Origin: Chlorokybus atmophyticus
Lineage: Eukaryota; Plantae; Mesostigma and Chlorokybus algae
Reading direction: 5' to 3'
Assembly: GCA_009103225.1 (NCBI GenBank)
Contig: RHPI01002262.1
Coordinates: 785,213 to 849,212 of the forward strand
Length of the DNA stretch: 64,000 nucleotides
The position numbers were made by a program, and so were the translations under genes. Positions 30,662 to 45,263 of the stretch are shown here, in pieces. The notes under the pieces are model-generated. The model was not told where the DNA came from, did not search any database, and saw only the letters and a list, made by a program, of their open reading frames with translations. How positions within the stretch are numbered: the first letter of the stretch is position 1; each line of letters starts with the position of its first letter.

Positions 30662-33600
30662 TCATCCTGTGGGATCGTGTACTTGGTACTCCCCCGACGC
30701 GTGCAGCACCCCCATCAGGTACAGCATGGCGTCATACGCTGGAAACTCCCCTTGCGGCACCTATGAGACCACTCAGGTAAGTGCATTACACCAGCAACCA
30801 ACTACTTATTCAACACCTCTCTCCCATGCTCACCTCTGTGTCCCACAGCGTCTGTATGTACCCCAAACCCTCCTTCCCCGTCACTTTCTTCGCCAGTCTC
30901 GTCGTCAGCCGCGGCAGGAACGCGTTCATCCCCACCAGACCGAAGCGGTCGACCGTGCCGTTGGAAGGGAGCGGAGAGCCGGAGAGGGAGTAGAAGGGTA
31001 GGTAGTGCTGCTGGCCTTGGGCTGGGTGGGGAAAAGTGTGAGTGTGTGGGAAGGTAGGAGGCAAGTGGTTGGGGTGAGGGGGCGTACCATTGAAGAAGTT
31101 GAAGAGGCGTTTGCGGTAGGCGTCTGAACGGAAGATCTCCTTCGGCTCAAACCATGCCCAATCCAACTGTGGTCGTAAAGGTCAGAACCATGGTGTGCTT
31201 GCATGCGTGTTGAGTGTCGTGTGCATGCAGTGGTACAACGCACATGCGCACACATACACGCGAGTACACACACGCTTACACATTCAGGAGTGGTCAAGAG
31301 GCGAGTACACACGCACGCACGCATGCATGCAGACGCGTGCACACAAGCGCACGCACAGAGACACACATGCACGCAAGCATGTATGGGCATGCATGTATGT
31401 TTGTGAGCGCGCGCAAACACCCTCACACTCCAGCACCAACTCACCGCAAGTTGGTGTCCTGCCATCCACGCATGCTTTCCGAAATACGCTTCCCCGGTCC
31501 CCTCCCCGACCGGCGTCCCGTCATGCAGCGTCGCTTCCGGAAACAGTCCGGTCTTGGCATTCGCTACAGCCTCCATGTACTGGCGAGACTTCACGGCCAA
31601 CTGGTGCCAAAAAGCTTTCTTGCCGCCACCGTAACTGACAAGGGCAAGTTTGATAAGTTAGGTGTCATCCCAACATACAGATTTGACTGCAATTGCCAGT
31701 CGTTCACACGCAGGCATGCATGTTTGCACTGCTCACAGCATGGGGTATGGCATGTAATGAGCCTATCACTTGGTATTGGAGCGTTTACTAAGAGTGACTA
31801 AATTTCATGTAGAGCATTACAGTATTGCACCCCTTTTGGTTGGCTGTGTCCAAGGCCACGACCTACTTACCGGTGGGACATGGTTTGGGCTAGGATCTCA
31901 TAAAAGGCTGGCATGTGGACAGATGGCCGCGTGAGGACAGTCCTGCCAATTGAAGTGAGTGATCACATTTCAACATGTGTGTGCCTGTGCATGTCCGTGC
32001 GTGCGTGCACGTGTGACGCATCATGCAGAAAATAAGGTATGTTTTGCTCACCCTCCATCAACATTGGTAAGGTACACGTCCAGCGTCGTCTTGTTGATCA
32101 TATTGACTATCCCCGTGCTGGCGTTCCAGCTCCCACCGGTTTCCTTGCCTATCATCGCCTGGAGGATGTTCTGGCCTTCCAGGTAATAGTCTCCACTCGC
32201 ATCAGGTCCTGAGACACAAAGCGTGTTGATGTGGTCCTGTAACGTTGTCCTGTGATGTGTTATGCAACATGTTTGTGTTGGCAATACCTTCGAATTGCCA
32301 GCGCTGCGCGGCAAATATGAGAGACATAGCCATATATTGTGCAGCGAAGGTGTCGGGATCGGGATCAACTAGTTGTCCATCAACAGTGACCTGAACAGGT
32401 GATGAAGAGAGGTTTATGACTGTCAGTCCCATCATGACAAGTAACGTAAATGACCAGTTTAAATTGAATAAACTCACTTCTCCTGCGCAAAGGCCTGCGA
32501 GCAAGCTTGGAGGCTGATACTGCATGCGCAAGCGCACAAAGTTCCAGATCTTGTCAAAGTCTGGCTTGACGCTGAGTACAAGATGTGAATGTTTGTAATA
32601 TGTCCTTGCAATGCATTACACACAGAGACTGCGTGCTTGCGTGCGTGATGAGTGCGTGTGTGCATGTGTGTGTGTACGTGTGTGAGTGTGTGTGTGCGCG
32701 CGCACATGTGTCAGTGTAGCGCTATGTTCGCATGTGACTGGGCGTAAGTGTGCATGCATGTGCACACAAGCACACACACACATACTGTCAAACATCATGT
32801 CTCCCTCTCCCTCACTTGTATTGTAGCGTGACCATCATTGCGAGCGCCATGACATCCGATCGCACAACATCTGCCGACCCATCTTTGACCCATCCCATGT
32901 AATCAGGAGTCTGCGTGTAGACAGGGACCCTACCTCCAACACCGTAAAACACTTGCTGGTAAGAACTGTTCATGTTGGTTTGGACCTCCAGAGTGCTCTG
33001 CAGAGTGTGAGGACATTTGTGTTAGGGGGGGGTTGGATTGGGTGGGTAGGTGGGTTGTGGTGCACTTACGTAGCCCAATGTGGCGAAGTAATTCTGGTAT
33101 TTCCCGGTGTAGAATGAACCGAAGCGAAGGTCGCCTTGGCCGGCCTTGCCAACGATGGTAACGGCTGCAAAGAAAACGTGTGTTCACTTGTGTGCATGCA
33201 CACTAACATACACGCGCACACACATACACGGATGCACCTGCGCACGCACGCATGGGCATACGTGCATGCACACATACGCGCACACGCACACAGGCACGCA
33301 CATATACACACATACACGTGCACACACGCGCGCACGCATGGGCACACGCTCATGCACACACAAGTAAACACGCACACAGGCACGCACATACACACATACA
33401 CACACGCTTGCTCGCGCTCGCGCGCACGCATGCACGCATGTAACGTTGCGGCCCTGCTTTACCTGGAACACCTCCAACGATGATCACTGCCAGTATAGCA
33501 AAGGCAGGCGTGCGCAGACCCCTGTGTCGCACAAACCACATTATGTTATAAGCATGTTAACACTGCGTGCATCACAAACCGTTCGTGACAAACTTGCGGG

Positions 33601-36600
33601 TACTTATGGGGTACTCACCATACTGGCAAGTTGAGTATCGCCGCAAGTGTGCAGCGGGCAGCGGGCCACGTGTTGAGAAGCACAAACATGCCCAAACCAA
33701 GGGAACCGCCGACGCTGAACGCACCCCTCGCTGGACCAAGTATCTGATGCATACAGCGGGTTAGTCAATGGGTGGTGAACAAAACATTGCGCGTGTCCGT
33801 GTGCATGTGCCCGTTTGTGCGTGTGCGCAGATGCGTCTGCACGCAATTATGGGTGTATGTGTGTGTGCGCACGCATGTGCGCATGTGCATGCGTGCGTGC
33901 GAGTGTATGCGCGTGTGTGTGCACACGCGCGTGGTCGTGTGTGCGTTTACGCGTGGGCATGTGTGTGCGTGCACGCGTGCTTATGCATGCATGTGTGCGA
34001 GCGTGTGTGCGGGTGTATGTGTGTGCATCTGCGCGCGCATGTGTGTCTCAATGCGTGATACGAGTTCAATTGCACGCACATCGACTGCTCCCCACTCACC
34101 GGCACCCACAGCGACGCGAGCGCGACCCCCATCCCGCACCATATGCTCACGCACATGAACAGGTTCGGCAGCTCCAGCGACGGGAAGATCCCCTCCACGT
34201 GGGTACCCCACGCCATGGCCTTTCCACCAACAGCAGTCAACACCGCCTCGATAGTACCTATTGAAGGTGGTGTTATTGTTGTTGTTGTTGTTGTGAGCGT
34301 TAATGTATCACTTACCGAGGAATGTAATCCATGCGAAGCCGAACCATCCCTGCATGGCGCGCCACAGGTCCACGGCGGCGGTGCCGTCCAGGAAGAGGAT
34401 GTAGCAGGCCAGCATCATGCCGATGAAGCGGAAGGACTGCGTGCGGGAGGATGGGTCAGTGTGCGTGCGTGCGGNNNNNNNNNNNNNNNNNNNNNNNNNN
34501 NNNNNNNNNNNNNNNNNNNNNNNNNNNNNNNNNNNNNNNNNNNNNNNNNNNCCCTGTTACCACCAGGCATGTGTTACACGCGGCGGTGAATGACTGTTGT
34601 TATCTGACAGTGCAATGTGTCACTACACGCTGAGAAAGAAAACACAAAAAGGAAACACAGTTTGTGTCTCTCTACGCTTTCTCGTGCACATCGCCTATCA
34701 CGTATAAGTAAACTTGTTGCATTGGTGTCATTTCATTAACCAAAGAGTCTTAAGTTACGCTTGTTTGTCGGGGGGGGAGGTGCGTGCGTGTGCGCGATAA
34801 TGTGTACTCACCTGGTACAGCACCATGCTTGCGACAAGTATGCTACCCTTTGTCCAACCCTCACCTGAAGGCGCAGGTGTTGTACTGCTTGCCAGTGTGT
34901 GTGTTGTTGTGTGTCTTGCATGCGCGCTCACACACGCACGCACGCACGCATGTGCATAGCACTCATGGACGCATGGACGCACCTTGCACGAAGAACTGCA
35001 CAGGGGAGATGCCGGCGATGAGGTAAAACATGGCAAGGATGAAGATGTTGAAGGCCACAATACTCCCAAGCGGGTACAACGTCTGCATAACCAAAACAAA
35101 TGTTATCTCTGTGATAAGGTCTTCACATGGGTACAAGCGTCAAAACTCACACGTGCGTACCATGTCGCAGAAGACCATGAGGCGCGCGAACCAGATGAAG
35201 AAACTCTGCCGCCGCTGGGCGCGCGTCCAGTAGCCGATATCGTCCTGGTGAAGGGGCTGCATAGGGTAAAAGGTAAGGGTCCTTGACTGTAACCCAATAG
35301 CTTCTATGTGGCAGTATAAGCTAGTTCTGTTGGATTGTGTATAGGGTGTGCGTGCGTGCGTCCAAGCGTCCTTGTGTGTGGGCGGGCGTGTGCATGTTTG
35401 CACGTGCGTGTGCGTGTACGTGTGTGTGCGTGCCCCACCTGTGTTTCGCCGGCGATGTCCTGTCGGTGATAGTCCTGCAGCCGTCGCTTGTACTGCAGCC
35501 TGAGCGGCGGCTCCAGGAACCGCTTCTTGAAGATGCGCCAGTCCAGCGCCAGCAGAAGCATCTGGACGGACCTGCAGGTAGCGAAAGCAGTCGATCTGTT
35601 GGTATACTCACAAGAACATGCATACTTTGCATGCATGTTATGGTGCAAGCAGACGGCGGTTATTACTGTATGAGTGTGCACAATGTGCATGCGCATATGT
35701 GCGTGCGCATGCGTCCGTGCACACGCATACTTGCATGTGTTTGTGTCGCACATTCACAACCTACTACTCCCCACTCACCCGCACACCCATCGCTTCCGTT
35801 CTTCCATCGTCTCCCCCGCGCTCTCCCTGCACAGCCCGCTGCACAGGTTCAGATTCAAGTAACTCCCCTGCCACCCGAACGCGTGCAGCTTGTTGCCCGT
35901 GGCCGCGTCCTCCGTCAGGCAGCCGTAGATGAAGCCGAGGGAGTCGTCGAGGGCGGGGCGGAAGAAGAGGGCGTTGGTGCCGGCGAAGGAGGCGAGGCCG
36001 AGGCCGTCGCGACCGGGCTGGGGGAGGGAGAGGGTGAGTGTGAGTGTGTGCGTGCACGGAGTGAGTCTTGGTGGGGTTGATGGTTTTGTTGTTGGTGTGA
36101 TGCTATATGGTGTGGCGTGTGGTTTGAGTTGTGGAGTGACAGATGCATGTGTGCGCATGCGTGCGTGCGTGCATGTGTTTAAGTGCTTGATGGCACTGTG
36201 TGTGTGCGTGCGTGCGTATGTGTGCATATGTGTGCGTGCGTGCGCGTGCGTGTGTGTTCGTGTGTGCTCTTCAGATCACTGATGCACTACAACTTTTGTG
36301 ACCTGCATGGATGCGAAGAAGAGGCCGTTCGATTGGTACAGCGGGTCATCCTCCCCATTCGACTCCGCAATATTCGTGAACGTTTGCGGCGTCTGCACCC
36401 CATGCACCCACCATCACGCACCATCACCCACACACCCACACACCCACATCACATTTCACACGTCCCTTACCTGCACAAAAGCGACCTCCCAGTTCGGCCT
36501 CCACCTCAGCTCCTTCTTGTCGTAAGTGTAAAAGACAGGCAGAGTGTACTGCAAGAAGGTCGGCTCGGGCTCCATGTCGGCGTCCAAGAAACCCAAAAAG

Positions 36601-39238
36601 TCAGCCGTGGTGCCTGTGGGGGATACACACAATATGTAGTTTGCTGTTGTGTTTTGGCATTGTTATGTTGTTGGTTGATGTCGCGCGCGCGCACACGCAC
36701 GCATGCACACGTACACACATATACACGAGCGTGCAAGCGCACATACACAAGTGTATAAGTATACATGTGTGCATGTGCAAACACACGTGTGCCCTTGCAC
36801 GCGTGTGGGCGCATGTGCGCAAGCAAGGTGTAGATACGCGTGCGTGTGCAGGCGCGCGCACGCACGCATGTACACGCGCACGCTCGCACACACACACTGA
36901 CTCCTCTACCCTCCCCTACCCGCATTGTATATGGCGTTCTCCAGGTTCCCCGTCTTGAAGTGCGACTCGCGTCCCTTCATCCGCGCGATGATCGACACCG
37001 CGGGGAGCTTGCCCGAATCGTCCACGTAGGTCACGATCAGGACGCCGCCGGGAGCAGCATGCCTCCTGTTGGGTTAGTAAACATGTTGGTCATGTGGGTT
37101 ATGTGTAAGCTTGTGTTTGTGGTTGTGGGTGGGTGGGTGTGGCTTGCCTGGGGAGCATGTGGCCGGGGACTTTCATACGGTAGCTCTTACAACCCTTCAT
37201 CAGACCGGAGACCTGTGTGAGTTTGCGGGGGGTTAGGACATGATGTTGACAATGACGGTGGTGGTGGTGGTGGTGGTGGTGGTGGTGGTGGTGGTGGTGA
37301 TGATGATGTTGCCACTTAAAAACAACAACTGAGATATGCAGATGTTTACCATTTCTTCCATCTCTTGCCCAAGAGTGGACACGCTGTATCTCCCGTCTTT
37401 CCTCTTGCCAAGATACCCATCATCCAGAATCTGCGCACACGCACACGCACACAAGTGAGGCACAATGCAGACGTGATAGTAAAGACCAAAACACAGTCGT
37501 TCGAACGATGATCCCTGTGCACAGGACAGGTTTGCATGTGTTACCTTCACTCTCAGCTTGCTCGCAGGGTAATCGAGCGCGAGACACTTCTGCAAAGGCC
37601 CCTTCACCTGCATATGCAAAGCCAAATGGCTCCAGTCTCCTGGTTGCATCACTCAAGCACCTTGAGGTAATCTGTGCGTGTGTGCACGCATGTGCGTGTG
37701 CGTGCGTGTGTGCAGGCGTGTGTGTGTGTGCAGGCGTGTGTGCACACACCGCCACCCCCACCCACACGCACGTACACACGCATGCACACGCACATGCGTG
37801 CACACTCATACGCACATGCACATGTGTACGCACGTGCGATTGCACACCTGTGCGTGCATGAGTGCACATAAGCACATGCCCATGCACATGTATGCGTGCG
37901 TGTGCACCCACCCACCCACAGGCACACGCGCACGCACACGCCCCGCNNNCCTCCCCCTCACCACATCGACCGGTTCCAGATAATGGCATATCATCATGTC
38001 CACGACCGGCCACCCCCGTTCATCAAACCGCGGCCTCAGCGACCGCAGCGTCCGGAACTCCCGCCGCGTCGACCCCCAGAAGTTGAAGAAGAAGAAGATG
38101 TTGAGGAGGAAGGAGAGGAGCTCGGAGAGGAGGAAGAGGGTCGAGACGAACGCGTTGTCGTAGGCCTGGAGGGAACAAGTTGTCTGTCAAGTGGGTGGGA
38201 GTGATGGTGATGGTGTATGTGTGCGTGTGCGTGTGTGTATGTGTCTGCGTGTGCGTGTGGGTGCGTGCGCACGCATGCGCCAACACACTCGCTCGCGCGT
38301 GCGCATGCAGGCATGCATGCATGTGTGTGTTGAGACGTACTTGTATCAGGGCCCAGAAGTAGAAGGGACTCAGCAACATGAATATTATGTAACAGGGACG
38401 GAAGAGGTACCTGGCATGTACACAGCGAACGCATTGAGAATAGGGACCACTCTCTCATGCATGTTTTACGCACTCACACACGTACGCATGCGCACACACA
38501 CACGTGTGCACGCGCGCGTGCACACATACATGCTTGCCTAATGATCATAGGAGTGGTGTACTTGGAGGCCGCTTCACGCATGGGCTCGTCTTCAGGCACG
38601 TCTTTGTGTTTGGCCCATCGGCCTCTCAGCCCAATCTGCGGTCGCTGCCACCACCGTGGGCTTTTCATCGACGGTGAATGAGCCGGTATGTTGCTGCTGC
38701 CGTTGTTGATGCTGTTGTTGTCCTTTGGTAACACTCTCCCGTTGCTCACTTTTGGCATTTGCGTCTTGGTCGCAGGCAGCGTGGGCGTGTTGTTGGGACT
38801 CTTCAAGTCCACATGCACGCTGTTGTGATCAACTGTTGGGAACATTGAGAGTGAAGGGTTGGCTCGGACTGAAGTCACATGCTTAACCGGTTCTGGCGAT
38901 TCCGATAGGGAGGACAACTCTGAATCCGGATCTACATGTGGATCTGGTTCTGGTTCTGCATCCGGGTCAGGTAGATCCGGATCGATGTTGCTCTCGGGTG
39001 GAATGAGCAGGAGCAAGCGAGAAGCTGGCGACAAGGGTCCAAGAGTTTGAACCGGTTCAGCTGATGCGGCTCCATTTGAGGTTGAGATTGGGACGGGTTC
39101 AACGGGTTTGGCTGATCTGGATCTGATGGATGAACCCCTCTCCTCACCCTCTTTGAACCCAACATGTTGGCCTGAAGCACGCCCGAGCGGAGATGCGCGG
39201 AGAGTGCGTGGGGAGCGCGAAGAGGTAGAAGGCAACAT
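30662..39238 (-). CDS. Cellulose-synthase-like GT2 processive glycosyltransferase fused to a C-terminal GH8 (Rex-like) domain; about 25 exons
   Basis: GT2: [24 protein letters not shown]...[45 protein letters not shown], plus several TM helices. GH8: [88 protein letters not shown]. Intron phases are compatible across the junction and across the N-gap. Confidence 0.9.
34475..34551. other. Assembly gap (N run) inside an intron of the GT2-GH8 gene
   Basis: N bases. The flanking exons (…VLYQ| and |SFRFIG…) are both phase 0, so no coding exon is obviously missing. Confidence 0.95.
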
Positions 39239-39903
39239 TGTGGTTGAACAACTTTAGAATGCTTGTCACAAAGGGTGCATCTGCATAGAGCCACAGCACA
39301 CGCAATGGCCAAGACATCAGAGATGAATTTCCTGCGACTCAGTGCCTTCTTGTTCAAGAAGGCACTGGGGTTGGCAGCCTTGCACACATAGTCTGCTGAT
39401 TTTATTCACAGTGGTTATGTGTCAGGTTGACAAAAAGCACCACTCCTACACCACTCCAGCACTCTGCGCTGCATGACTTTACCGCAGGTGTGCCTGCTGT
39501 TGGCGAGCTTTGCTTGCACAGTTCCTTCCGACAAACGACTGGAAATTCTGCACTGTGCAGTCGTTCATGCCTGCTGAAACCTCTAGCACAATCCATCATC
39601 AGGCTGCATGCTGTCTTGAATCAATCTGTCCACATGGTGTGCAGGTGTGTATGTGTTGCGCGCGTGCGTGTTACACAGTGAATACCCTGTTACCACCAGG
39701 CATGTGTTACACGCGGCGGTGAATGACTGTTGTTATCTGACAGTGCAATGTGTCACTACACGCTGAGAAAGAAAACACAAAAAGGAAACACAGTTTGTGT
39801 CTCTCTACGCTTTCTCGTGCACATCGCCTATCACGTATAAGTAAACTTGTTGCATTGGTGTCATTTCATTAACCAAAGAGTCTTAAGTTACGCTTGTTTG
39901 TCG
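34552..39903 (+). repeat. 219-bp identical direct repeat, copies 34552-34770 and 39685-39903
   Basis: ccctgttaccaccagg...cgcttgtttgtcg is identical at both sites. The first copy starts immediately after the N-gap. Confidence 0.9.
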
Positions 39904-42299: not shown

Positions 42300-43705
42300 T
42301 CACTGCAAGGAGAGGTCGCCAGCAGGGGTCTCACCAGACCTCAGCTTGGTCCAGAACTTGTTGGTCTCCTGGATGACCTTGAGGGTGTAGGCCTTATCCT
42401 GGGGCTTGTCATTGAGGCCAAACTTGTTCTGAGGCTTGCCATCGGGAGTCTTGTAGTCCCTGAACCACACGCGGATTGCCTCCAGCGTGCCCGGAAAGTG
42501 CTTCTCTACGTCGTCCACATCATTGACCAGCTGGGCCTTGGGGTCATTGACATCGATGGCAACAACCTGTCCAGTCACACAAGCACAAGCACTGTCAGCG
42601 TGCATGTGGATGCTATACACATGCGCATTTACGTGCGCGTATGCATGCCCACATGCACGCACGCACGCAACACAGCACAACACACATGCCTGGTAAGTAC
42701 ATGGTAGAGACAGACCAGCACACTAGCAAGCATAGCTTCCAGTGTTGTGGTGCATTGTGTGGTATGGTGTTGTGTGCACGCATTAGTGGAGCTGCACATA
42801 CCTTCCAGTCAAGCTCGCCCTCGTCAATCATAGCATAGACGGCTAGTGGCTTCACGCGCAGCACTTCGCCCATCTTGGCTTGGCGTTCGCCGATTTCAAC
42901 AACATCCACGGGGTCATTGTCGCCAGTGGGATTGCCCTCCACGTCCGAGGCGGCATGGGTGGGGTCCTCCCACGTCTGAGGCAGCAGGCCGTAGTTCCAG
43001 TTGATGGCGTAAGGGTAGAAGCGCAGCTTGCCCTTCTTCACATCCTGCTTGATGGGCGTGCGCTCCTCCTCTGTTGCCACCTCCATCTTCGCAGCAGTGT
43101 CCTGCACATTCACAATTCCACACACGTCACGCACACACATGCTCATGGTCCAACATGCTCAGTAACCAAGGCACGGACTGCGTGCACACAATGCTGGCAT
43201 TGCATTGCCAATGCACGCGCGCATTGAATGGACAACAACACGCTATTACTGAGCAACGCAGCAATGCAACATGCACCGCGACTGCAACGATGCGAGGGCA
43301 GCACATGATGAGCATGCATCATGGTTAGGGTTTCGGCACTGAGTTTGTCACTGGACTAAGTTTCTCTGCACTGACCTTAGGGATCTCCACGACGAAGTTG
43401 AAGAGGCCGTCACCGGCCTCAAGGGGGATGTCGTGCCATGGGCTGACGGCCTGGCCGCCCTCCTTGAAGAACAGCCTGTACTCGAGTGTGTTCTCCTCGC
43501 CCTTCTTTTCAAGATCCCACGTCACCTGAGCGCTGCTGCTGGCCGCCTGGCACCTCACAGCACCTAACCTGGCGGGCCGCCTCGCAGCCGCACGCAGCGC
43601 CACGGGCCTCAGCGCCGCAGCCGGCCTGCTGGCACTGCCTCTGCATAGCAATGCTGGCTGTGCGGCCGTCGACACAGCCGCCCTCATCGCCGCCGCCGCC
43701 GCCAT
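42300..43705 (-). CDS. ppa: Plastid soluble inorganic pyrophosphatase (family I, eukaryote-like; PPA6/sPPase1 type)
   Basis: Transit peptide; [70 protein letters not shown]. Confidence 0.96.
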
Positions 43706-43949
43706 CCTCACCACCAAGCTAGACAGCAACAATGCCCAGCAGGCAGCCAACCTGGCCCATAAGCTCAGATCCGGATTATATCTTCCCCACTTAGATACCG
43801 GATCAAAATACTCTGACCTCTCGAACCAGCCTCGTCAACCCCGTTATTTTCGGGCTTGTCTCGAAGCTTCAATGGATCGGGATCGAGCATGCATTGGGCG
43901 CACTTCGGCGCTGCGGCGGACAGAAGTGGTGTTGTTGGTGGCGGCGGCG
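43706..43949. promoter_or_regulatory. Compact bidirectional promoter between ppa and CPN10
   Basis: Start codons are 244 bp apart head-to-head. Site-II-like GGCCCA at about 43754, a gatccgg/ccggatc inverted pair, and a telo-box in intron 1 of each gene (43325 and 44127). Confidence 0.6.
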
Positions 43950-45263
43950 ATGGCGGCGGCGGCGGCGGGGTTCAAGAGGCTGGTGCCGCTGCTGGACAGG
44001 GTGCTGATTGAAAAAGTACTGCCGCAGGCCAAGTCCGCCGGCGGAGTGCTGCTTCCGGAGACCGCCGCAAGCAAGCTCAACCACGGCCAGGTAGAAAGTG
44101 GTGGCTGGTGAAAGGGGCATTCTGTTTTAGGGTTTGCTCTGGTCTTTCTTGCGAGCAGCAAATTGTTGTACACATGGGCTGGTGTGTGCCAAAGGAGCGT
44201 GCGATGTGCATGCATGGTCGTCGTTGGCCATGCATGCACAAGCAATCCAACGTAACGACCGTTAATTATTGGGGAAAGCGTGTCTGACCATTTGCCATTT
44301 GAGCATCATGCATTAGCTGCGCTATTTGTAGCGCGAAGACTCTTACTGTCGTCAACTGCATGCACGCTTTCGTTGTCACTTGCAGTAAGATGTCCACGCA
44401 TGAACTCCCCATTGCTGGCGCATGTTGCCTAAGGTGTTGCTTGCGCCTGTTTGGATGACAGATTCATCATCAACGCCTTAGATTACAAATCGGTATGACA
44501 TCAGAGGTGATGCTTGCTGTAGGCGCAGGTTTCCAAACTTTCTTTACCTATGTAAGCTCCCACATTCAAGCTGTCGTATTCTATACTCATGTTATGCTTC
44601 AAGTGCACGAATGCCGTCCACCAATTCTTTTATTGGCATTCATGCACTGCTGTTACAGCTTCATCCTGTCGCTTGCATTTTCTTGTTGGTATGCAACACT
44701 TGGTGTGCGAGTGCATGACTTGTTATACCATATAACGAAGAACCCCAAGTGGCAGTGCTGTTTGCATTGGTGGTGTACCATATTCAACAGCTCAGCTTGA
44801 TTGTTTGCATGTCCGTCAAATCATCAGCTGAAGCGGTATATGCGTTCAGGTTGTGGCAGTTGGCACTGGAGCCCGGACGCGAGATGGCAACACAGTCCCC
44901 GTTGCAGTCAAGGTGGGTCGCAAGATTTCACAATCATTGTACTGTACCACTGCACACTCACGAGCAAATTAGCTCTCAACGCAAGTGTTTATTTTTGTAC
45001 GGTGGAGTTACATCATGTGATAAGCAGTTGCACACATAGACATAATACACGCAGAACTACTTAAAGCATTGGCAAAGTGCATGTCGAGGGTTGTGGTTTT
45101 CGTGTCGGTACCAACTTGTGACATTATGTAATGATGTACTGTCAACCAGGTTGGAGACACGGTGTTGCTGCCAGAGTTTGGAGGCACCAATGTAAAGCTG
45201 GGTGAAAAGGATTACGTAATCTTTCGTGACGATGACATCCTTGGTGTGCTGCAAAAAGAATGA
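43950..45263 (+). CDS. CPN10: 10 kDa chaperonin (GroES/Cpn10), probably mitochondrial; 3 exons
   Basis: FKRLVPLLDRVLIEK...SAGGVLLPE / VVAVGTGARTRDGNTVPVAVK / VGDTVLLPEFGGTNVKLGEKDYVIFRDDDILGVL. Confidence 0.95.

Follow-up and report, generated by a model that had tools for sequence, protein, structure and literature searches.

The stretch of DNA analysed here, referred to below as the window, comprises 64,000 nucleotides (nt) of the Chlorokybus atmophyticus assembly GCA_009103225.1 (contig RHPI01002262.1, positions 785,213 to 849,212 of the forward strand), and it contains eukaryotic, spliced genes. Its minus strand carries, from 33164 to 30662, the part of a gene that derives from glycoside hydrolase family 8 (GH8), divided into ten exons that encode ~419 residues. 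Immediately upstream lie exons for hydrophobic helices, and farther upstream are exons with motifs of a cellulose-synthase-like glycosyltransferase of family GT2. In the GH8-derived part, the four residues that do not vary among bacterial relatives, which include the catalytic pair, have all been replaced, while the reading frame has stayed open.

For the exon model, the minus strand was read in each of its frames between 33200 and 30640, and the junctions were verified by script (Table 1). The nine introns, of 66-278 nt, are all of the GT...AG type with compatible phases, and there are zero in-frame stops in the ~419 codons. The original prediction had described an intact frame over about ten exons on this strand and at these coordinates, and it was accurate in each respect, the number of exons being exactly ten. 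The model was searched one exon at a time, and junction bases were joined solely for reading boundary codons.

Table 1. Exons of the GH8-derived gene part and of the adjoining GT2-like part, with other features of the window (positions are those of the window; profile positions refer to the Rex-type GH8 profile described in the text)
Feature	Position	Strand	Observation
GH8 exon A	33070-33164	-	profile 1-13; TGKYQNY..GY; first GH8 exon, begins at 33164
GH8 exon B	32816-32997	-	profile 17-69; Asp (GAT, 32856-32854) at the acid position; Arg67 equivalent retained; matches PDB 6g0n
GH8 exon C	32478-32571	-	profile 75-91; Gly (32483-32481) replaces the invariant Trp of FAW
GH8 exon D	32288-32390	-	profile 119-132; Phe (TTC, 32348-32346) where Rex (D128) and PbRex8 (D127) have the signature Asp
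GH8 exon E	32052-32208	-	profile 139-167
GH8 exon F	31871-31942	-	profile 182-199; Val (GTC, 31920-31918) at the Tyr of PSYH (Rex Y198)
GH8 exon G	31445-31634	-	profile 203-256; His (CAT, 31474-31472) at the base Asp (Rex D263, PbRex8 D261); matches PDB 5yxt
GH8 exon H	31088-31166	-	profile 264-285
GH8 exon I	30834-31021	-	least conserved; TVDRFGLVG; Asp (30950-30948) at the Rex reducing-end His, by-eye GLVG alignment
GH8 exon J	30662-30760	-	profile 362-382, then terminator TGA (30664-30662)
Exon X6	33463-33521	-	last transmembrane helix; CAG acceptor, GTAAAG donor; phase fits exon A
Exon X5	33743-33619	-	contiguous with the GH8 exons
Exon X4	34257-34100	-	contiguous with the GH8 exons
Exon X3	34436-34316	-	contiguous with the GH8 exons
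Exon X2	34864-34812	-	hydrophobic; phase fits X3
Exon X1	35082-34983	-	hydrophobic; in-phase chain toward the GH8 exons
Assembly gap	34475-34551		77 N, in the X2-X3 intron
219-nt segment beside the gap	34552-34770		100% identical to 39685-39903
QxxRW motif of the GT2 part	35787-35801	-	reads ERKRW
Putative first exon	38474-39238	-	254-codon Ser/Pro-rich low-complexity stretch; no Pfam match
Very short N runs	37947-37949; 55413		the former inside the GT2 gene region
Low-complexity intron repeats	33170-33460; 32600-32800; 31200-31440; many others		30-copy family
Pyrophosphatase-like gene	~42300-43750	-	resembles soluble inorganic pyrophosphatase
GroES/cpn10-like exon	~43870-44110	+	

The relatives of the domain were identified at several levels. 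When exons were searched against solved structures with phmmer, exon G matched the Rex structures 5yxt (E=6.7e-6) and 1wu4 (~1e-5), exon B matched the Teredinibacter GH8 xylanase TtGH8 (6g0n/6g00, E=0.006), and for these two exons no BcsZ, CelA or chitosanase chain was returned from the PDB at E up to 10. The best solved-structure matches, exon by exon, are the reducing-end xylose-releasing exo-oligoxylanases, Rex (EC 3.2.1.156; B. halodurans 1WU4 and the P. barengoltzii enzyme PbRex8, 5YXT) and TtGH8 (6G00). An exhaustive phmmer search with exon G through 1.84 billion representative proteins yielded a single true relative, P0003, a bacterial GH8 protein of 683 residues (E=9e-4, 40% identity); two further matches were discarded as repeat artefacts. 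With the GH8 region of P0003 we gathered 120 bacterial Rex-type GH8 proteins and made a profile from them, to which nine of the ten exons align in strict order over a span of 1-382. When the window was translated in six frames into 2399 pieces, the seven that matched the profile best were these exons, again colinear. Exon I gave no profile match of its own and was placed between H and J by its length and a GLVG anchor.

The likeness to Rex-type enzymes extends to the order and spacing of their motifs, which begin with TGKY.N, VRS(E)G..MM, F..IW, DG...(ASDGE)..RW and PS(Y)H.PAFYE and continue with TGL.P(D/E), DGTP, (D)AW and YD..LYL...SG.Y. Exons D, E-F and G keep the anchor-to-anchor spacing of Rex or P0003, at an overall identity to P0003, the nearest bacterial relative, of ~27%. 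Pfam, including PF01270 (Glyco_hydro_8), gave no match for any exon or raw open reading frame piece, these fragments (23-63 residues) being too short and too diverged. The GH8-derived domain of the original prediction is therefore genuine, in that its homology to the Rex-type profile is colinear over the full length, and as judged by this homology the product of the ten exons is a complete domain, strongly diverged, that descends from a bacterial Rex/xylanase-type GH8, which presumably arrived in the streptophyte lineage through horizontal transfer.

Four columns of the profile are invariant in 120/120 of the bacterial proteins (E58, D116, Y187 and D253 in profile numbering), and at these the Chlorokybus domain has Asp, Phe, Val and His, respectively, with the codons checked. 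At the acid position, which corresponds to Glu73 of TtGH8 (6g0n/6g00) and Glu69 of PbRex8, Glu has become Asp (VRSDV versus VRSEG). The Asp of the PROSITE signature of the family, A-[ST]-D-[AG]-[DE], with its Asp column at Rex D128, has become Phe (PDTFAAQY), and the Tyr that holds the nucleophilic water has become Val (PSVH versus DPSYHLPAFYE) within a block that is 70% identical. Finally, the base Asp, equivalent to Asp261 of PbRex8 (5yxt), has become His (FGKHAWM versus F(S/Y)DAW), in a column anchored by the AW behind it and by the distance from DGTP to the base, which P0003 shares. These are the four motif substitutions that had been noted by eye; each is present, the alignments were verified exon by exon, and the accompanying claim that every canonical catalytic position is replaced stands as well, since all four of the invariant columns are changed.

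The placement of the signature Phe and of the base His was examined against other alignments. From the DG anchor to the RW anchor, PbRex8 and the alga each have 24 residues, HMMER leaves the block ungapped, and the Thr and Ala beside the Phe fit the [ST] and [AG] of the signature; together these place the Phe at the position of the signature Asp. A competing placement of PDPD, found two residues upstream, on the similar PAPD of Rex, by which the Asp would be kept, was rejected because it requires a two-residue indel while the spacing is identical without one, and a gapped BLOSUM alignment to P0003 puts no Asp at the signature position either. At the base, a local alignment to the mutant chain 2drq placed a Gly at position 263, which we regard as an end-of-alignment artefact, as His is obtained from the AW anchor and in three other alignments. 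An inserted loop of the GH8b type was looked for between exons G and H, and none appears.

The roles of the replaced residues have been described in several enzymes. In TtGH8, Glu73 is the acid on helix alpha2 and Asp281 the base where alpha8 ends, and the D281N variant is ~10^4-fold less active (PMC6173055). Besides the catalytic Glu69 and Asp261, PbRex8 (5YXT) has recognition residues, namely His317 for the reducing end, Arg67 at subsite -1, and both Asn122 and Arg253 at subsite -3 (PMC6661730). Asp263 is the base of B. halodurans Rex, for which Y198F, D263N and D263C are hydrolysis-deficient glycosynthase mutants (PMC11600177), and BeRex8A retains the Glu, Asp and Asp (PMC8417218).

Changes in the Chlorokybus domain extend beyond the four columns. 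Behind the acid position, Gly, Ser and Tyr are altered, and so are the Trp of FAW, invariant in the relatives, the Asp ahead of PSYH, one Trp of EIWA and, behind the base, Arg and Asn. The -3 subsite equivalents of Asn122 and Arg253 are Pro and Gly, and the equivalent of the reducing-end His (His317/319/321), which in Rex belongs to the loop that recognises the terminal xylose and closes off subsite +2, is Asp, the latter with lower confidence because it comes from a by-eye alignment in an exon that has no profile match. Among the six residues assigned to catalysis or recognition in PMC6661730, only the equivalent of Arg67 survives. Across the 74 mappable columns that are near-invariant (>=97% conserved), 34 are kept and 40 (54%) are changed; retained are motifs of the helix core, i.e., RW, AW, PAFYEI and YD..LYL..SG.Y.

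Despite ~27% identity to the nearest bacterial relative and the acquisition of nine introns, the ~419 codons contain neither stops nor frameshifts, where ~15 stops would be expected were intron-like sequence read in frame. The composition is also of the coding type, with a G+C content of 0.68 at third codon positions (GC3) and 0.41 at second positions (GC2) versus 0.50 in the introns; for comparison, GC3 is 0.74 in the pyrophosphatase exon of the same window. The intact frame, the preserved segment lengths and the codon composition together point to long-term selection on the reading frame, and we infer from them that the domain has been under purifying selection.

The introns themselves abound in imperfect (CA/CG)n-like GCACACGC/GTGTGCGT low-complexity repeats, which give rise on both strands to long spurious open reading frames with a high content of C, V, H, A and R.

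The original prediction had treated the GH8 domain as fused, and the part of this claim that concerns the junction itself stands, in that a transmembrane exon of the putative GT2 gene, X6, runs in phase into exon A. Exons X1-X6 have canonical splice sites, encode hydrophobic helices and form an in-phase chain into exon A; the final G of X6 and the CC of exon A make up a GCC (Ala) codon, and the GH8 domain starts ~10 residues past the transmembrane helix of X6. The four transmembrane exons X3-X6 and the GH8 exons are contiguous without a gap. Farther upstream, exons carry the GT2 motifs DDG, DAD and TED, with weak Pfam matches to Cellulose_synt and Glyco_tranf_2_3. The chain from this GT2 core crosses an assembly gap, and to that extent the fusion claim is weakened. 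The gap adjoins a 219-nt segment whose identical copy lies ~450 nt upstream of the first long exon of the gene; the segment is most likely an unresolved repeat, although it could instead be either a transposon or a scaffolding problem.

Set beside the BcsA plan, X1 and X2 look like TM5 and TM6, X3 like the interface helix, whose gating-loop motif is degenerate, and X4 and X5 like TM7 and TM8. By the same comparison, X6 would be an extra helix beyond that plan, which would put the GH8 domain on the outer face of the membrane. As a separate observation on the GT2 part, its QxxRW motif has Glu where processive GT2 enzymes usually have Gln; the synthase half may itself be atypical.

The inverting GH8 mechanism depends on a Glu/Asp pair and a Tyr-held water, and since none of these is left, the domain is very unlikely to be a hydrolase of the conventional kind; we consider it highly probable that canonical GH8 hydrolytic activity has been lost. 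The whole chain of inference, by which a pseudo-hydrolase module has been kept on a glycan synthase, is probable on balance. According to this explanation, a bacterial Rex/xylanase-type GH8 would have entered a spliced gene of Chlorokybus, where it would follow, in frame, the final transmembrane helix of a cellulose-synthase-like GT2 glycan synthase with multiple membrane passes. The resulting domain would be unable to run the canonical inverting mechanism, i.e., it would be a pseudo-hydrolase, and selection would keep it for a non-catalytic job. Given what seems to be one helix more than the BcsA plan, the domain would probably sit on the outer face, beside the exit of the channel, where it might contact or steer the emerging chain or else act as a module for assembly or spacing. 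Of the steps of this proposal, the binding role is the weakest.

Several points weigh against this explanation. With 54% of near-invariant columns changed, the loss of four out of four catalytic residues is not strongly enriched over background (0.54^4 = ~0.085), and the domain is simply very diverged; the argument for lost activity rests on the expectation that an active enzyme keeps exactly these residues, and not on enrichment. The losses in the cleft argue against retained strong sugar binding of the ancestral kind, and they weaken the hypothetical role as a chain-binding, length-measuring or anti-crystallisation lectin that the original prediction had suggested. No orthologue of exon G and no transcript-derived match to it was found among the 1.84 billion representatives, in a phmmer search that misses relatives below ~45% identity over 63 residues, and a metagenome scan with the same exon returned bacterial-like loci only, at 42% identity, and no orthologue. 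The membrane topology is deduced by analogy with the BcsA architecture, and between the GT2 core and the transmembrane and GH8 exons lies the gap described above.

A different explanation is that glycosidase or transglycosylase activity persists in the domain through a non-canonical set of residues, in which Asp would act as a shortened acid and His or a recruited carboxylate as the base, and which would trim or remodel the product of the GT2 synthase in the manner of BcsZ and KORRIGAN, trimming and remodelling partners of cellulose synthases. The Asp at the acid position does retain a carboxylate, and the neighbouring Arg is conserved (VRSD). Histidine acts as a general base in some glycosidases, e.g., in the Asp-His dyad of the GH3 enzyme NagZ, and acidic residues lie near two of the lost positions, so that carboxylates from the DPDPD nearby, or from the GEGTGE before the His, could reach the active site. 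In addition, lichenase activity is known for a GH8 from a different lineage of algae (PMC11126685). However, all four invariant catalytic columns are changed, and in TtGH8 a change of the base Asp costs ~10^4-fold by itself; moreover, the residue that should hold the nucleophilic water is Val, and the residues behind the acid (Gly, Ser and Tyr) and behind the base (Arg and Asn) are altered as well. We therefore consider an active enzyme unlikely.

Other proteins with the (alpha/alpha)6 fold include lyases, epimerases and phosphorylases, and the putative barrel of Chlorokybus might likewise have been repurposed, for a different chemistry or ligand or purely as a protein-protein or oligomerisation module that has no carbohydrate role. 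The remodelling of the active-site region as a whole, with helix-core motifs retained, would fit such a history, but positive evidence for an alternative activity is lacking and no relatives that share the new residues were found, and we regard repurposing as quite unlikely. It is likewise quite unlikely that the GH8 exons are a relic, i.e., absent from the mature mRNA or protein, in recent decay, or joined to the GT2 gene by a scaffolding artefact, as the missing protein or transcript-derived matches to exon G, the failure of Pfam to recognise any single exon, and the N gap, flanked by a perfect repeat, that splits the GT2 core from the transmembrane/GH8 part could suggest, because the nine introns are canonical and phase-compatible, the frame is free of stops and frameshifts at this level of divergence, the composition is that of coding sequence, and X3-X6, gap-free with the GH8 exons and phase-compatible with X2, supply what the GT2 core otherwise lacks.

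The pseudo-hydrolase module that we favour can be set beside several known pairings of a synthase with a hydrolase. GH8 endoglucanases of the BcsZ and CMCax type are coupled to a GT2 synthase in bacterial cellulose synthase operons; BcsZ, however, is a separate and active periplasmic enzyme, whereas the Chlorokybus exons match structures of the Rex/xylanase type. Compared with Rex itself, the domain differs in its four catalytic residues, in the His of the reducing-end loop (Asp here) and in the Trp of FAW (Gly here), and it is set apart from soluble bacterial Rex by its nine introns, its apparent tether to a membrane synthase and its low identity of ~27%. KORRIGAN (mentioned in PMC10334666) is similar in being a hydrolase fold held at the membrane beside a glycan synthase, but it belongs to GH9, is a separate polypeptide and is catalytically active.

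The closest architectural analogue is the cellulose synthase (CesA) of tunicates, in which an N-terminal processive GT2 is followed by a C-terminal GH6 domain that lacks a catalytic Asp and "seems functionless" (PMC10334666). The Chlorokybus gene would likewise combine in one polypeptide a GT2 synthase and a bacterial-type hydrolase domain, whose catalytic centre is mutated as in the tunicate protein. The differences are that the Chlorokybus domain belongs to GH8, a family with an (alpha/alpha)6 barrel, and not to GH6 with its different fold, that its host is a streptophyte alga and not an animal, and that four catalytic positions are affected as opposed to one; furthermore, it is the tunicate gene whose function has been genetically proven.

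GH8 proteins have also been reported from lichen-forming Trebouxiophyceae, where they are GH8b-like and a recombinant protein had lichenase activity (PMC11126685; Puginier et al. 2024). Like these, the Chlorokybus domain is a bacterial-type GH8 in a green-algal nuclear genome, presumably by horizontal transfer, but it is Rex/GH8a-like, apparently fused to a synthase, devoid of the catalytic residues and hosted by a streptophyte. The supplementary GH8 tree of PMC11126685 includes a 1KP transcript of Chlorokybus atmophyticus, Chlatm_2020016_AZZW, which falls in a large clade of green algae together with Spirotaenia and many streptophytes; should it derive from the present gene, it would be evidence of expression and a way to orthologues. 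In the literature searched, GH8 and Chlorokybus were not mentioned together, and GH8 does not occur in the paper on the Chlorokybus genome.

Elsewhere in the window, the pyrophosphatase-like gene bears an N-terminal transit-like extension, and the GroES/cpn10-like exon contains ..LIEKVLPQAKSAGGVLLPE.. in its translation. The putative first exon, the short N runs and the remaining features are listed in Table 1.

The reason why a hydrolase partner such as BcsZ, KORRIGAN or the GH6 domain of tunicate CesA is required by glycan synthases is a long-standing question. If the pseudo-hydrolase explanation is true, the Chlorokybus gene would bear on it as a second independent case, with a hydrolase fold that is welded to a synthase and has lost its catalytic residues, and the essential contribution of such a partner could be non-hydrolytic, e.g., the binding, guiding or spacing of the nascent chain. 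It is conceivable, though we hold this parallel only tentatively, that a streptophyte arrived independently at the same solution as the tunicates, with a silent bacterial-derived barrel on the outer face of a GT2 synthase that handles the chain at the channel exit. The gene would then offer a compact, testable construct from an early-diverging streptophyte, and it adds a GH8 of bacterial type to the streptophyte lineage.

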